Part shown: piece by piece, positions 1 to 41,964 of the stretch
Numbering within the stretch: the first letter of the stretch is position 1
How the letters are laid out: each line of letters starts with the position of its first letter
Assembly: GCA_047495785.1 (NCBI GenBank)
Contig: JBLDXI010000014.1
Location: 1-64,000 of the forward strand
Source of the DNA: Lepidodermella squamata
Taxonomy: Eukaryota; Animalia; Gastrotricha
Direction of reading: 5' to 3'
Length of the DNA stretch: 64,000 nt
Translations under genes and position numbers: made by a program
Notes under the pieces: model-generated
The model's database searches: none
Seen by the model: the letters and a program-made list of their open reading frames with translations, nothing else
What the model was told of the DNA's origin: nothing

Positions 1-90
1 ATCTCGTGAGAGTTCCCTATCCATATCCCCATCTCTAACCATATCTCTATCTCTATCTCTATCCCTATCTCTATCTCTATCTCTATAGCT
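1..90. repeat. Degenerate ATCTCT/ATCCCT hexamer microsatellite
   Basis: Runs of atctct/atccct; a similar run lies at 772-830. Confidence 0.85.
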
Positions 91-165
91 ATAAAATAGA
101 GCAAGGTCAAAGTCCAAGGTCGAATTCTCGCGCCTTAATGCCACGTGGCGCCAGTAGAAGGGAAA

Positions 166-198
166 AAAATGGCGGTGCTACTTCTCTGTTATAAAAGC
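166..198 (+). promoter_or_regulatory. Putative promoter upstream of the hammerhead (AAAATGGCGG YY1-like site and TATAAAAG box)
   Basis: Both motifs lie ~70-100 nt upstream of the ribozyme core; motif match only. Confidence 0.3.
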
Positions 199-251
199 AC
201 ACTAAAAACTGCATTGAAATCATTCATCCAGCTTTTATTTCTAGCAAAGAA

Positions 252-321
252 AGCAACGAAAGTCACTGATGAGCCTGCTACCCACAGGCGAAACCGGTCT
301 GACGTTTTTTCGGGTGTTGCT
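252..321 (+). ncRNA. Minimal type I hammerhead ribozyme (Penelope-like element/retrozyme type)
   Basis: GTCA-CTGATGA-GCCTG-ctaccca-CAGGC-GAAA-CCGG-TC-TGAC. Intact core, stem II GCCTG/CAGGC, palindromic minimal stem III ACCGGT, stem I GTCA/TGAC extended by AGCAAC/GTTGCT. Predicted cleavage after C299 (GUC). Confidence 0.9.
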
Positions 322-412
322 ATTTGTCATTAATGATCACTGTTTACTTTGTGTTTGCTTATTATTTTCGATTAACCACATTGAGAGCCTTGCAAAGGCT
401 GCTATTGGTATC

Positions 413-503
413 TGCTTCCCTTCAAGGGTGGCCTTTCCAGTCATGCTTCCCTATATGGGTTGCCTTTTGTAATTTGCTTCCCTATGTGGGTGGCTTTTCC
501 AAA
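413..503. repeat. 3 x 31-bp imperfect tandem repeat
   Basis: TGCTTCCCT....GGGTKGCYTTT units start at 413, 444 and 475. Confidence 0.85.
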
Positions 504-771
504 TGTTTGGTAAGCTGTAACCATCGACCTACCTACCAGAGATTTACGAGATGGTAATAAACGAATTTACAATTGTGGCTCATTGAATGAAGCCAAAAGG
601 GAAAGGATTGAACGCGTTGTTGAGACATGAGGCTTGATAAATCGAATCTTTATCACGACCTCATTTCATCCCTACATCAGAAGTGTACCCATTCAAGACG
701 GTAATTGAGTTCTTGCTAGTGAATAGCACAGTGTCATGTCAGAGGCGGTTAAAACCGTGAATTTAACCTGC

Positions 772-830
772 ACCTCTATCTCCATCTCCATCTCCATCTC
801 TATCCTATCCCTATCCCTATCCCTATCCTC
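772..830. repeat. ATCTCC/ATCCCT hexamer run (telomere-variant-like)
   Basis: CCCTAT differs from CCCTAA by one base and has the same strand polarity as the true tracts. Confidence 0.8.
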
Positions 831-930
831 GGATAGGGCTAAAGCTATTGAAATACAGGCCTGGCTCTCTAGTAGCATTAGAGCTAACTGCCGGGGTGCT
901 TAGGCTACCTGTCTGGTAATTCTCTCCTAA

Positions 931-979
931 CTAACCCTAACCCTAACCCTAACCCTAACCCTAACCCTAACCCTAACCC
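931..979. repeat. Telomeric tract (CCCTAA)~8
   Basis: Perfect CCCTAA units. Confidence 0.98.
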
Positions 980-2604: not shown

Positions 2605-3011
2605 GATAAATACGTATGTAAAAATCAAATTAAATACTTTGAATCCTCGGAAAATGGAAATTGCACGCCGATTCGGTCTTGGCCAACACAAATTTGCCCT
2701 CTCAGCTATCGCAGTCGAATTCGCCTTAGAATTCGAAAATCGATACGCAGATATTTTCATTCATTGTATTCATTCTTTGAATACAAATTTTGTCTGAGTT
2801 CCTTTGAGCCATTTGTCGGGAATATTTATCGGATCTCAGTATTATCGCGGAGTGGTTAGGAACACATAATTTTTGTGATGAAGAATCATCATAAACATGA
2901 AAATGATGCTCATCTTGGATCCCTATGGTGGAGTAATGGTAGGGCCCGGTTTGACTCTCAATAAAACGAGAGGCCCCGGTTTGCAGCTCGTCTGTATTAA
3001 ACTATTACCAA

Positions 3012-3120
3012 TAACCCTAACCCTAACCCTAACCCTAACCCTAGGCTACCTGTCTCTGTCTGGTATTTTCCCTAAACTAACCCTAACCCTAACCCTAACC
3101 CTAACCCTAACCCTAACCCC
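3012..3120. repeat. Two telomeric tracts (3012-3043, 3070-3120) separated by a 26-nt non-telomeric insert
   Basis: (CCCTAA)~5 + GGCTACCTGTCTCTGTCTGGTATTTT + (CCCTAA)~8. Confidence 0.97.
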
Positions 3121-26179: not shown

Positions 26180-28555
26180 AGACATTGCTATTTGTATAAA
26201 CTTGCTTATTTTTTCCACCATCGCTCTTTTTACGACTTCGAATTCGACTTTTTGTTAAGATTTCTCTCTTGGGTAAATTTGTTGTGTTTCCGATATCCGC
26301 AATTTATTCTTTCTTCTTTCGCATGCGCTCCCGAAGCGCAGGAGAATTCTTGGAATCTGAGAATCTTGGAAATATTCGAGATTGTAGAAATCCGTGAGCG
26401 CAGGTAAAAGACCAAAGAATAACGAAGAATCGCTTGCTGACATGATATAATATATCAATCAAATAGGCTGACGCATTTTTTAATTTTCACGCTATTTATG
26501 TATAATATTCCTTCGCTTTTCTTCTTCGCTGATGTAAAACCTGCTGCACTCTTCGCTGCTGTAAAATACCTGAAGCCTGACTTATTGAACACAGGCCACC
26601 TTCTAACTGCTGTTGTAAATTCTGTGACAGAAAAGTCGCATTTATTAAATTGTATTATAAAATCGTGATTCGCGTGAAGATTGCACAAATATATTATTAC
26701 TTGAAACGATTAGTTTTGTTGGAAATTAGGTTGAAATAAAACTCATCATAAACATCAATCATCTCCGGTCGTTTTATTATAAAGCAGATAGACAATTTGT
26801 AAGAACTGTTAAAGAATGAACAGCCACGTAAAAATTGATAGCGTGAGCGATACCAGTTTGCCACTTGGTTTCGGCGGCGACTCGGCTCGTAAGGCGCAAG
26901 CGTTCATCGGTCCACACTAGAAAAGGCGTACAGATAGTCATAATTTGTTCCCGATAGAGGCACTATGGCTACAATTATCTCAACCATTTCAAATGTTGAA
27001 TATGTCGAAAATTAATATTCAGTGAATCGTTCACCTTTTAAGCCCTTAAGTTACATGGCCCCGAACTTCAGGAACCTATAACCAACAATAGCCTGGTCCT
27101 CTTATAAACAGTTTCATATCAGGGGGGAGGGGGGATTTCATTTCTCTATGGCTAGCTATAGAATAATCCTTTATTTCCGTGCGTTCATTCTAGTGGGATA
27201 TTCAACTCCAGGCTGGAAATGATCACGAAGCTCAGCGGCACAGATGTAAATCACTAGCGTTTCAGAATAGGTAAGTCAAACAGTTGTTAAAACGCAGTGA
27301 TGGGGAATAGAACCCACTAAATGCTGATTCGTTCCACGGGCTTGTGCCGTCAATTAAACTGCCCATTTGGCGAGAAACTGACGAAATGTTTGCGCATTGT
27401 TTGCGCATTGCGGTAAAATAATTACCACCAATGGAGACTAAAAACGAAACGCTGGCGAAATTTCAAGATGTAACATTTTGCACTAAATAGAAGATATGTT
27501 AGAATGAAATTACCTGTAATCCGACGCAATTGCCACACGAAACCAGCTTAAGATAAAAAAATTCAATAGAAGATGAAAGTCGAAGGCGATTGCACTCACC
27601 GAACAATGTGTCCTGAAGACAGAAATATGTTTGTAAACAAATTTTTCGCGAAAAAAGTATATCTAACCTGTGCGACGGAAGGCAATGTTGAGCGCACCGC
27701 TGAGTTATCTGTGGGAAACTCCCTGATACCGTAATCTGCAAGGCATGCGGTAAAAATGCTATTTATTGAGTAAATCAGAAAGGCAACCTCGCAGTATCGA
27801 TCCAAGTTGTTGCACACGGTGATATATATATTTCGTTCGCACGTGTCTCGAGAACCTGGATTAAATCTCTAGTACATCACTTTCAACAAGAATTGGAAAT
27901 ACGCAGCTAACCTTGGCACTCGTAGCAACGCAGAACGGCGAATGTAGGGCTAAAAAACAAGCACACTATTGCCAAGCCGACGATGAAGCGGTCGATGGAG
28001 AACAGAAACCAGCAATAACGTTTTAATATAAACCAAGTCATTGTTAGAACACGAATTTGTTGCAGGTGAAAATATTTAGTACCTGTGTCACGGTAATTCC
28101 GTGACATCCGCCTGTCGCCTCTTTCGATCAAATTGTGCAATCGCACTATAACAGATCACTGCGCACGCAAACTACGGCGGATCCAAACGGACCAAAATTC
28201 AAGGTGAAAGAAGAGAGAATAAAGAAACTAATACAGCCGGTATTATGCGCTGGATTCTTTCATCGTTCTTCCTCTTCCCTCTATTCTTCCTTTCTTCCAC
28301 TTCTTCGTCTTCCAATACTTATCTGTCTTCCAGATTGCGCTCTTCCATTTCTTCCCTTTTATAGACGAATTCGTGAGTCACTGACGAGCCAATCATAATT
28401 CGACAAATTTCAATTTGAAAATTATTAAGGCGCATTTTTTATTTTGTTGCTGCGCAGAAAGCGATTTTATTGTCGCACACACATAAAAATGCGTGCACCT
28501 ATTTTGTGCGTGTGTGTTTGTGTGTTTGAAACGCAAAATGCAGTGAATGACTACT

Positions 28556-38190: not shown

Positions 38191-39436
38191 GCAACTTCCG
38201 ATGCAACTTCCGCCACCGCGGAATAATCGCGCGGGTTTTCCTCTCTAATCTTTTCAACCAATTTAATGTGTATATTTGCGCAAAAATATATATTGTTATT
38301 TTAAATATGTGTCTTACAATAGGCAATAAGAAGTCTTGAGAAAAAATATATGGTTTGCGGGGTAACAAAAGTATGTATGGGGGATGAGTCCTGGGAACAA
38401 GCTACGTTCAAGTTAGCTGCGGGGTTGCTAAAGCAGCTGAAGCACAAAGCACACAAAGCATGAAGCCCATCCTGAACTCAACATGAAGCTCTCTGACCGC
38501 CTTCCCTGTACCTGCACTAATCACGCCTAACCCTACCCTATGCATGTTTTTCTGTCACCAACCGAAGTTTCTTGGTCGGGAGAAGGTTTTTAGCCACCGC
38601 AATAGATGGGCTTGCAGCCTACTGCCGTCGGGAATGCCATAAATGTACGATATTATACTATATACTTTTTATTCGCGTTAATTGCGCCATTTCAAATTCT
38701 AATTTTAGTAGAGCCGCCTGAAACCTTGAAGCTTGAAGATTCTGCTACTCGTCCATCCTGCCTTCTGGAGCTTCCTGTTTGCTGACCTGTTTCTCTTCAC
38801 ACCTAAATTATTCAGTAGCTACGAGTCGCTATTGGTCTAATTGGTCTGTATCTTATTAAGAATCTTATCTATATTATATTGTTGTAGACGTTGGACGTAC
38901 TGCAACTCTTTCATTTAGCGGAACCCTTTCGTGAATTCATACACAATAACCTTTACAGTCCCACATTATTACTTTAAGATTGTAGATTGTCACGTCTAGT
39001 AGCATCAATTTTCGATCATCAATTTGATGACATAAATTATTGATTATTGGCTCTTGAGTTCACAGGAACCAGGACCGATAATTCGCCACTACCTTTCTCA
39101 CCGCGCCATCAAGAGGGTTATTTTTCCGCTTTCAACTGAGACATTCAACTTAAAACGACTTCGAGACCCTATTGAACTCTTGAAAGGAGAAATTCCTTAA
39201 ATAATGCTGTGCTTAGGTTATTTTTCAGCTCGAATGTTTACTGTAACATCCTGAACCCACCACAAATTGTGCACGTTTGTATTTTCTAAGTTGATTTTGT
39301 TTGATTGGATATTCGGCAAATTTCTTTCCGCAAGAAGGGAAACCCAATTTTTTACGTCATATGCGATCAATTTTTTTTAGGTGAAGCATATTTATTAATT
39401 TTTCTCATCCGAATTGCGATAATAGTCGCAAATATT

Positions 39437-41964
39437 ATGTCGGATGAAGCCGCTGACGTAGGAGGAGACTTGAATGGCAAAGAGAACGTTAACATCATTG
39501 TATTCACCAAATCAGTGCTGTTGCAGCGTGAAATTCATGGATTTTTGATTGGCGGAGAGAAAAGATTACTTTTCTCCGAAATTAATGCCGAACTCTGCCG
39601 CCGAGGTGTTCAGCAGTTGGACATCTTGGAAAAATTGAAGGCTCTGCAGCTACAACTTACAGAGACCACGGCGGAGCAGCGTGATGTTATAGCTTCACAA
39701 TTGGGTCTAAAAGATTCGTCATCGCTCGATGAGCAATACTTAATTCGGCAGACCGATGCAGAGCGATTATGTGGAGCGGTTATTCGTTGCCAAAGAGTCG
39801 CGTCTGACAGCGATTTGACCGAAAACACTTTCAAGGTTCAACATGAAATATTCGGAAAGTCTCGCGGGCTATTCATCCCGGAGCTTTACAATAGCTCCAA
39901 TGCCGAGTGTATTACTTGCATTCAATGCAGAGCACTCTTATCTCCTCAAGATTTTGTTCGCCACAATCACTCGCCGCCCAAGAATCAGGCACGTCATGTT
40001 TCAGAGTATGTCGGTAATGCTTATTTCTCTATTCCGCTCCAATACAGGTACGGCATTGGGGTCTGGAGTCGACGCGGTGGTGGCGCTATGTCTTTGTTGC
40101 CAAGGATCAGGAAAATCGCGAAGTATACCAGCGGCTTCTCGACGAACTTAAGCAGCGGTTTCCACCATCAGCCAGTGAAAACGTACGTTTCTCTGTATTT
40201 CGCTCTGCTTTTCATCCTCTGGCTGTTAGCGAGGCAGCTTTAATTAATTTTATTGCGGGCGTGGGTCGATTCATCAGGCAATAGCGGCGCTTTTTACGGT
40301 GATAGTAAGCAAACGTATGTGTGTTCGCACGTGCTGCCGAGCGTATGGCCGGCAGAGCTATTGCGCAAGTGGCCTTCTGGCGAACTCAGCCATAGCTCGG
40401 CTAGCCGGCGTCGCGCCGGTTGGCGTTGCATAACGCGCCTTAGTAGTAGCTACCGCGTGTCCCAGAGCGTTCACGACTATGTCTGTCTAATGTTCATTGT
40501 TACGCAACCGACCTTAGGTCACAAACTTTCCAATCAAGCCGACGGCGACTTCGGACTACAAGACCGCGTCGCAGACGACGGCGTCCATCTTCAGCCAGCT
40601 CGTCGCGCTCCAGGACTCAGTGGATGCGAATAAGCCACCAGCCGCAATCACATTCGAATCATTGTTCAACCAACAACGGCAAAGTTTTCTTGAAAGGTAC
40701 TAATGAATGATTTACAAATGTGATATAAACAGAATCGACAATTTTTGCGTTATTAAGGTTATGTGGATATGATACGACAACTAATTCACGAACGCCAGAT
40801 AACGGCCGATCGACTTCGTTTGCCGAAATTATGGCAAGCGCCATGGCTAGTGCGGCGAAGTACTTGCAAAATCCAGCGGCGTCGGCCGTGTCGACCCCCT
40901 GTGATTCTCAGCCATCATCGGCTTTTGTCCCTCCGCCAAATGTGCGGCTGCAAGACATGTTCGGCCGTCAGTCAGCGTGGCGGAGGACCGACCTCGGTGA
41001 AGATGACGACGACCTGAGCGTCAAACGGCGCAAACTCGACGACTCGGCGTCACCGCTTTCGTCGGCAGCGTCCTCAGCCGACAACGTCAACAACAGCGCA
41101 AATATTTCGGCGTATTCTGTGAGCGAGGCGGCGCTAGCGACGGTGGCCGCCATCAGCTCGCACGCCAAATTGCAATCGGAAGCGGCGGCGGTCATGGCGC
41201 TTCCGCCACAGATCCTCCTCGGCGACTCCCGCCCACATCCGGTTATGGCGGCCGTGTCGCGTTCGAAGGACGACGAGTCAGGTGAGGATGAGGATGACGC
41301 AACAACCGAGAAGCTGCTACGCTCGCAGCTCGGCGATGAGGTGTCCGTGCTGAAAAGAGCGTTTGCCAAGCAGCTGCTGGCTACTTTGGGTGGACTTCTC
41401 GCTGAGGAAGGCTCTACTCTGGTTGCAAAACTGAGCGAGGCACCTTTGGACTCGACTTTGGACGATACGCTCCTCGACGAGTTCCGTCAGCTTCGGGCGA
41501 AGCACGCGGCTCAAACAGCAGCGGCGGAGCAGACGCGACCAGCGGCGCCGAAACACATGACTGTGATGGGCAAGTACCTCGGTGAATTGCAGGACGAGAA
41601 GGCTGACTTGGAAGCGCGGGTACGATCACTGACGAGCGAATTGTCCCGCGCTAAGCAGGAGCAGAATGCCATGTCGCTGCGTCTCATGGAAAAAGAGCGC
41701 GAGTTGAATGAAATGCGCGCGGTGTTGCAGGCCTTCGTGCAGCCTGGATCGCAGCAGCGCCAGCAGCAGTCGAGCAGCGCATTTCTGACGCCAGCGACTA
41801 CCTCTGCGTTAACTACCGCCCTCTCCCCGATGCTTGACCCCCGGCGGGCGCTTCTCATGATGATGGCGCAAGAGAAATTCGGCGTAAACTACGCGACACG
41901 ATCAGCCGAGGAGCTGGACGCGGCGCTTTCGATGGTTGCTAGTGCGACAACTATGTCCTCGTGA
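39437..41964 (+). CDS. SKI: Ski/SnoN family corepressor, 4 exons, ~690 aa
   Basis: DHD (GGEKRL...TDAERLC), SAND-like Smad4-binding domain (HEIFGK.RG..PELY...CITC..C...F..H.H...HWG), C-terminal coiled coil. Exons 39437-39988, 40048-40182, 40518-40696, 40758-41964. Confidence 0.88.

Follow-up and report, generated by a model that had tools for sequence, protein, structure and literature searches.

A complete type I hammerhead ribozyme in a telomere-attached non-coding unit of Lepidodermella squamata, a likely passenger of an endonuclease-free PLE

Organization of the locus

The window, by which we mean the whole stretch of DNA analysed here, is the first 64 kb of contig C14 of L. squamata, and the genome that was scanned along with it comprises 121 Mb in 151 contigs. 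The window opens on a copy of a repeated element, namely the last 941 nt, on the 3′ side, of a non-coding unit of 1605 nt, which the start of the contig cuts short. A promoter-like region, a type I hammerhead ribozyme and a 3′-terminal module succeed one another in this copy before a telomeric tract is reached. An earlier note on this DNA had spoken of a downstream RNA of about 630 nt; the copy itself is no element of that size. The features are listed below, F1 being the sequence family of the window's hammerhead; contig C32 carries a tandem array of the unit and contig C13 an RT-encoding unit.

1-13, forward strand: end of the 676-nt 'body' of the unit, still matching the C32 tandem unit
14-86, forward strand: CTATCT/CCCTAT-type microsatellite (TRF), part of the unit and also present in the C32 units and in the RT-encoding C13 unit
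129-134, forward strand: CGCGCC block, order kept in diverged F1 subfamilies
142-147, forward strand: CACGTG block, order kept in diverged F1 subfamilies
169-175, forward strand: ATGGCGG block, order kept in diverged F1 subfamilies
190-196, forward strand: TATAAAA box
220-225, forward strand: initiator-like TCATTC (TCATT core at 220-224)
252-321, forward strand: type I hammerhead ribozyme (parts listed in the next section)
300-865, forward strand: non-coding 3′ region, from the cleavage site to the terminal module
774-828, forward strand: second CTATCT/CCCTAT-type microsatellite block
866-941, forward strand: 3′-terminal module, common to the RT-encoding element and ending in the docking motif
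926-941, forward strand: docking motif CCTAACTAACCCTAAC
942-979, forward strand: telomeric C-strand tract of CCCTAA repeats that links the element with the older chromosome end

TRF reports a repeat at 931-979 with 100% matches, and the docking end (926-941, then the tract to 979) lies 642 nt 3′ of C299. The hexamer microsatellites, of which there are two blocks per unit, look like degenerate telomere repeats. Three tandem hairpin-like repeats of about 31 nt (GCUUCCCU, 5 nt, GGGUGGC) occupy 412-504 on the forward strand, after the ribozyme and ahead of the 3′ module; their counterparts in the RT-encoding C13 unit are 81-87% alike, and a protein-binding array is a possible role for them.

On the far side of the telomeric tract, the reverse strand carries a LINE-like element at 980-2760, its ORFs being a gag with zf-CCHC and an endonuclease of the APE type. 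The tract (935-980) interrupts this element inside the endonuclease domain; the 3′ part of the element is absent, as would result from a break or an erosion that telomerase healed. A gene of the SKI/DAC family is found at 39305-40243.

The TATA-like box that had been noticed 5′ of the ribozyme is conserved in most subfamilies. A TATA-like motif stands 60-76 nt 5′ of CUGAUGA in seven of the nine distinct family-1 upstream regions, and TCATT (220-224), which follows the TATA box by 32 nt, is invariant in an alignment of six subfamilies. The transcription start is predicted at A222, 30 nt before the ribozyme; a start at this position would place the ribozyme within the first ~100 nt of the transcript, and cleavage would remove a capped leader of 78 nt.

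The hammerhead ribozyme at 252-321

The segment 252-321 of the forward strand is confirmed as a complete hammerhead motif of type I. Its parts are the following.

252-257 with 316-321, forward strand: distal stem I, A252-C257 (AGCAAC) with G316-U321 (GUUGCU)
Between the distal and proximal strands, forward strand: 5′ internal loop of stem I, 4 nt
262-265 with 300-303, forward strand: proximal stem I, G262-A265 (GUCA) with U300-C303 (UGAC)
266-272, forward strand: core CUGAUGA
273-277 with 285-289, forward strand: helix II, 5 bp (GCCUG with CAGGC)
278-284, forward strand: loop II, CUACCCA
280-283 with 312-315, forward strand: pseudoknot, A280-C283 with G312-U315 (ACCC/GGGU)
290-293, forward strand: core GAAA
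293-298, forward strand: helix III, palindrome ACCGGU (A15.1-U16.1 plus CCGG), found in about 40 copies
299, forward strand: predicted cleavage site C299, cut before U300 (U298 is U16.1)
Ending at 312-315, forward strand: 3′ internal loop of stem I, with GGGU as its last nucleotides, followed by GUUGCU

The motif has CUGANGA, GAAA and a cleavable H17 after U16.1, and its core is invariant in the alignments of genomic copies. The ribozyme is functional-looking, with a predicted cut between C299 and U300. The earlier note had placed the ribozyme and its cleavage position at the same coordinates, which agree with the anatomy of the motif and with a covariance model that is independent of the family (see below). 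It had also called the ribozyme minimal, an adjective that suits helix III only: stem I has 4 + 6 bp and is complemented by a covarying pseudoknot.

The motif pattern matches once in the window and never in 100 shuffles of it. Genome-wide, 45 matches were obtained with a looser core pattern, as against none in the reversed control, and 49 with a second pattern, as against four. We then relied on a covariance model trained on three other sequence families alone (F2-F4, defined below), the F1 sequences of the window's family being left out. This model recovers 252-321 end to end with 55.3 bits (E 3e-13), as the sole match in the 64 kb, and gives 41 strong and six weak matches genome-wide. A regular-expression match at 27613 of the window was dropped as a second hammerhead, as the covariance model does not recover it.

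The comparison with Rfam Hammerhead_1, which had been put forward as a check, does not reach the gathering threshold, and the same is true of the other hammerhead models used (RF00163 Hammerhead_1, RF00008 and RF03152 give nothing at gathering thresholds). In E-value mode there are weak matches to the RAGATH-1 hammerhead (18 bits versus 56.3) and to Hammerhead_3 (14.7 bits versus 48.5). The shortfall arises because helix III, which the Rfam models presuppose, is deleted; the RAGATH-1 alignment otherwise shows a perfect core. We therefore do not take these sub-threshold scores as evidence against the motif, since the loss stems from the missing helix III. Thermodynamic folding of the monomer (z = -0.14) is uninformative for so small a ribozyme.

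Covariation in five sequence families

The lack of covariation among genomic copies had been named as an observation that would speak against the ribozyme. Covariation is present: in about 41 genomic copies, which fall into five sequence families, helices I and II covary, as does a pseudoknot that joins loop II to stem I. In the alignment used for the counts (A2; 18-19 sequences, 18 of them distinct), 92.3% of the cells are paired, compared with 24-38% after a shift of the 3′ partners by 1-3 columns; 11 of the 16 pairs have changed on both sides, and the covariation score is reached by none of 500 shuffles. Helix II is 100% paired, with four of its five pairs changed on both sides, and proximal helix I is likewise 100% paired. 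In the distal stem I all six pairs have changed on both sides, with 94% pairing if the strands are anchored at the sequence ends. The families and their pairings are given below.

Family F1 (the window's): helix II GCCUG/CAGGC
Family F2: helix II GCUAC/GUAGC, with one GCUAU/AUAGC variant
Family F3: helix II GUCCC/GGGAC
Family F4: helix II GUUCUG/CAGAAC
Fifth, weaker-scoring family: copies at C7:4208538, C6:12292 and C54:596554
Pseudoknot in C13: ACCCC/GGGGU
Pseudoknot in C57, C20 and C46: GCCC(A)/(U)GGGC
Pseudoknot in F2: UAGCC/GGCUA (core AGCC/GGCU)
Pseudoknot in F3 and F4: UGACCA/UGGUCA (core GACC/GGUC)
Pseudoknot in the fifth family: flipped polarity, UGGC/GCCA (loop UUGGC with GCCAA)

The members of the fifth family have a genuine helix III hairpin (3-6 bp) along with the pseudoknot of flipped polarity. 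Those on C7 and C54 lie far from contig ends, and the one on C6 is 12 kb from the contig start. This family perhaps belongs to a different PLE lineage.

Across F1 subfamilies whose flanks cannot be aligned, only the hammerhead (251-325 in the window) and the 3′ module match. The compensatory changes that keep the helices and the pseudoknot paired indicate selection on the family. A scan of JGI metagenomes with the core pattern returned six contigs, including one hammerhead-like pair that is unrelated, and gave no cross-species covariation. This pair (L060:1346-1379 and L064) shares the same GAAACCGGUC|UGAC end with a 4-bp helix II, and comes from environmental contigs with no nearby telomere tracts.

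Pseudoknot and helix III

In each family the central nucleotides of loop II are complementary to the end of stem I's 3′ internal loop, just before the distal stem. The pairs vary between families in register, and the pseudoknot is 4-6 bp long. The longest run of complementarity between loop II and its own stem I averages 5.6 nt, compared with 3.9 nt for cross-family combinations and 3.8 nt for shuffles; these counts were made with a custom script, the MAFFT alignment having left the pseudoknot out of register. [quoted passage not shown] The window's ribozyme has the same kind of bracing. The hammerheads of PLEs, on the other hand, have been described in a review as minimal, without helix III and tertiary contacts (PMC6155905), whereas here a helix III of the dimer type is combined with a strongly covarying pseudoknot.

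The palindrome ACCGGU had rightly been compared with those of PLE and retrozyme hammerheads of the dimer type, whose description it matches (PMC4209133). It forms no stable hairpin within one copy, while 6 bp can form between two ribozyme copies, and helix III probably pairs only between two copies. The palindrome is invariant in about 40 copies, even where other sequence has changed; the single variant, ACGCGU, is also palindromic. This one compensatory case is thin evidence for an intermolecular helix III. RNAcofold of two copies does not predict the double hammerhead, a method which is uninformative for so small a ribozyme. Palindromic helices III in PLE hammerheads are thought to mean dimer action, and in vitro the PLE hammerheads tested so far cleave poorly (Cervera and de la Peña; PMC4209133).

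A non-coding unit and its RT-encoding partner

The segment 14-941 of the window is 95.4% identical to every unit of the 1605-nt tandem array at the end of contig C32. This array consists of at least eight direct units with one hammerhead each, and the seven units compared are identical. The longest ORF in the unit is of 111 aa. Within the array the docking motif CCUAACUAACCCUAAC runs on into 676 nt of non-coding sequence and then into the next unit, whereas in the window and in the innermost C32 unit it runs into a telomere tract instead.

A coding counterpart is found on C13. Its unit (6232 nt) has the same order of parts as the window, with a promoter, an F1 hammerhead, about 825 nt and the same 3′ module. 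The RT that it encodes is 844 aa long and shows the DKG motif of PLEs and YLDD but no endonuclease domain. A relative of this RT (944 aa) is encoded on C57. The Pfam RVT_1 scores of the two are 23-25 bits, below the curated cut-off. The nearest ESM Atlas clusters belong to families commonest in rotifers and basidiomycetes, which are the hosts of Athena and Coprina. A large protein search with the 944-aa RT returned no homologue at E 1e-3, and an exact-ORF look-up in public assemblies found no expression evidence on record.

The terminal module of the window with its telomere tract (866-979) is 99% identical to C13:10055-10168, whereas outside this segment the two units are at most 81-87% alike or cannot be aligned. 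An identical stretch of 45 nt precedes telomere tracts on C13 (twice), C32 and C15. Conservation of the hammerhead and the 3′ module only is typical of non-autonomous elements using an RT that a coding element provides. The 1605-nt unit is thus most likely a non-autonomous passenger copied by the RT of an endonuclease-free PLE, and we infer from these shared segments that a C13-type RT would mobilize it in trans.

Copies at chromosome ends

Near contig ends, at a distance of at most 35 kb, lie 37 of the 41 strong matches to the covariance model, and family-1 copies occur solely there. About 33 of these 37 are oriented as the telomere tracts predict: at left ends the expected strand has CCCTAA tracts downstream, and at right ends it has TTAGGG tracts upstream. 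The element's 3′ end faces the centromere, with the same junction nucleotide at C13, C32 and C15; this orientation agrees with target-primed synthesis at the G-rich 3′ end of the chromosome. Four matches are inverted, three at the extreme ends of C20, C32 and C46 and one on C57. The outermost copies at C32:4501300-4503781, C20:1-5000 and C46:1820100-1821300 stand head to head with the direct array; inverted outermost copies are either the inverted 5′-truncated copies typical of PLEs or fold-back artefacts of assembly.

Among about 11 copies of the family-1 type at the contig ends examined, nine traverse the hammerhead, two end before reaching it and the cleavage site is the starting point of none. 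When the whole genome was searched for post-cleavage sequence starting within 8 nt after a telomere tract, no case was found. Coding copies commonly carry two hammerheads (~1.45 units), and total copy lengths are alike, at ~9 kb for the 6.2-kb unit and at least 13 kb for the 1.6-kb unit. Two family-2 copies begin at or within the 5′ strand of the ribozyme, and circles explain these no better than do linear, uncleaved templates begun at the promoter.

Short copies are also found. At 3044-3080 of the window, a 37-nt 3′ end of the F1 type with an internal duplication of 6 nt lies between CCCTAA tracts (3015-3043 and 3081-3119); its appearance is that of a copy begun by priming at the docking site, left unfinished and then given a new cap by telomerase. 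On C15 a copy of 525 nt is likewise a short product from the docking end. The two together show the docking end to be the starting point of synthesis, which can break off early. A second type of 3′-terminal motif (...CCGGTTTGCAGCTCGTCTGTATTAAA...) is present at 2970-3014, adjoining the tract at 3015, and also ends family-2 hammerhead elements on C20 and C32. As the window contains no family-2 hammerhead, the copy that ends there is short.

Which RNA is the template?

Since the copies traverse the ribozyme, the templates would be multi-unit RNAs left uncleaved, or else RNAs whose cut ends were joined again, as circles or through end-to-end template jumps. Processing of multimers is favoured by the identical units, the similar total copy lengths and the internal docking motif of 1.5 telomere repeats. 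We consider it probable, with appreciable doubt, that a PLE-type hammerhead sits in a passenger unit whose multimers are processed and then re-joined or circularized as templates. Transcripts of several units would be cut by paired hammerheads into unit-length RNAs, and the cut ends would be re-joined or circularized, so that the docking motif becomes internal on the template. The telomeric G-overhang would anneal to this motif (of the CUAACCCUAAC type) as a primer for the endonuclease-free PLE RT. Reverse transcription would then run past the ribozyme and round again, giving products longer than one unit that keep the promoter and the ribozyme. In this scheme cleavage in vivo, its dependence on dimers and the circular or re-joined templates are inferences; the window copy, which holds one hammerhead, may be inactive alone. 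The identity of the C32 units could also have come about through unequal exchange, through template jumping from one linear RNA to another or through a collapse in the assembly. Circular RNAs of retrozymes have been proposed as templates for PLE RTs (PMC7229834).

A bolder and more specific version can be put forward only tentatively. The unit would be a telomere-docking retrozyme with its own promoter, a pseudoknot-braced, dimer-dependent hammerhead and a circular RNA of 1605 nt, copied by an endonuclease-free, telomerase-related RT through rolling-circle reverse transcription at the chromosome end. The G-overhang of the telomere would find its priming site in the internal CUAACCCUAAC, which resembles a telomerase template.

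It seems rather unlikely that the ribozyme acts instead as a switch, in which an inefficient, dimer-dependent removal of the capped 78-nt leader would turn some of the RNA from translation to template, or as a fold recognized by the RT, a role that has been proposed in Terminons. That the hammerhead lies no more than ~100 nt into the predicted transcript, in coding and non-coding units alike, would suit such a function, as would the conservation of the core and the pseudoknot in all copies, and Arkhipova and colleagues place the fold in a 3′ integration structure in which cleavage is auxiliary (PMC6431247). Yet the docking motif is 640-830 nt from the ribozyme and not adjacent to it, so that 'exposing' the repeats is hard to picture; the non-coding unit has nothing to translate; and copies of more than one unit and identical tandem units are left unexplained.

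The earlier note had suggested that the RNA downstream of the cut is a template for end extension. The part of this idea that stands is the geometry: a C-strand docking end does lie 642 nt downstream, in an orientation that suits priming by a G-overhang. More generally, the order and orientation of promoter, ribozyme and CCCTAA docking end agree with a TATA-started RNA that is cut after C299 to leave a linear template of ~640 nt with a C-strand end, and the 37-nt and 525-nt copies show that short docking-primed products do occur. This model nevertheless predicts copies starting from U300, of which the genome-wide search found none; the window copy and eight other family-1 copies extend upstream through the ribozyme and the promoter, and copies without promoter and ribozyme would be unable to propagate. 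We regard it as very unlikely. An inert passenger motif, intact through the youth of this copy and with no present role, is similarly improbable: the copy is cut by the contig start, a lone hammerhead is probably unable to dimerize on its own and hammerheads may simply parasitize PLEs (Craig et al.; PMC8557442), but the hammerhead and the 3′ module are the sole conserved segments across non-alignable subfamilies, with compensatory changes that keep helices and pseudoknot paired.

Comparison with known elements

The system as a whole is of a known type, comprising elements of the Athena/Terminon type and retrozymes. Athena and Terminon of bdelloid rotifers and Coprina of fungi have a telomerase-related DKG RT without endonuclease, as do the C13 and C57 units (PMC8557442, PMC6431247, PMC4209133). 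The L. squamata elements also resemble them in forming head-to-tail stacks at chromosome ends that are 5′-truncated and capped by telomere tracts, in having a 3′ end with reverse-complement telomeric repeats, and in their type I hammerhead, whose palindromic helix III is small. In contrast to all three, the window's unit encodes no protein and is not an autonomous endonuclease-free PLE. The compared endonuclease-free PLE system has TGTGGG as its host telomere repeat. The host repeat here is TTAGGG instead (for the compared system, see the ACACCC legend in PMC8557442). The spacing differs as well: in Terminons the telomeric stretch is directly 3′ of the hammerhead (PMC6431247), whereas the interval is 642 nt here, ~825 nt in the C13 units and ~330 nt in family 2.

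Like the non-LTR retrozymes of metazoans, the window's system consists of non-coding tandem units, each with one type I hammerhead and a short palindromic helix III. The unit is, however, at least four times larger (1605 nt versus 170-400 nt), and it occurs at chromosome ends only, attached to telomere tracts, whereas metazoan retrozymes are dispersed. Unlike retrozymes, it has its own TATA-plus-initiator promoter and a telomere-docking 3′ module in common with an RT element. Retrozymes are expressed as circular RNAs; a circular RNA of the window's unit is putative. The non-coding unit is closer to a retrozyme than to a Terminon, yet larger and confined to telomeres; the spacing of 330-830 nt, the TTAGGG host and the promoter-bearing non-coding tandem unit distinguish the system from those described. 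PLEs have been proposed as the partner that mobilizes metazoan retrozymes (PMC7229834; bioRxiv 10.64898/2026.07.22.740005), and a 2026 preprint argues from a phylogeny of the pLTR (pseudo-LTR of PLEs) that animal retrozymes derive from PLEs (bioRxiv 10.64898/2026.07.22.740005).

Telomerase RNA offers an analogy only. Here too an internal docking motif with CUAACCCUAAC, that is 1.5 telomere repeats, would be copied by a TERT-related RT, and we take CUAACCCUAAC to be equal to the vertebrate telomerase template. In contrast to telomerase RNA there is no template boundary and synthesis would continue into the element; we do not claim a relationship.

Significance

There is no agreed function for PLE hammerheads, and the case for animal retrozymes having arisen from PLEs has so far been made from phylogeny alone. 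The locus would provide a concrete pair of coding and non-coding elements. An endonuclease-free PLE with an RT gene and a non-coding tandem unit occur side by side in this genome, alike in the layout of their promoters and in hammerhead type, with 3′ docking modules that are 99% identical, and both are attached to TTAGGG tracts. With such a pair, the need for the ribozyme in retrotransposition, its action as a dimer and the use of circular templates are testable in one organism, as is the way in which a telomerase-related RT uses the chromosome end as a primer on an internal motif of 1.5 repeats. The covarying pseudoknot supplies natural compensatory variants. If the tentative reading as a telomere-docking retrozyme were true, the unit would be a living intermediate form connecting retrozymes, PLEs and telomerase.
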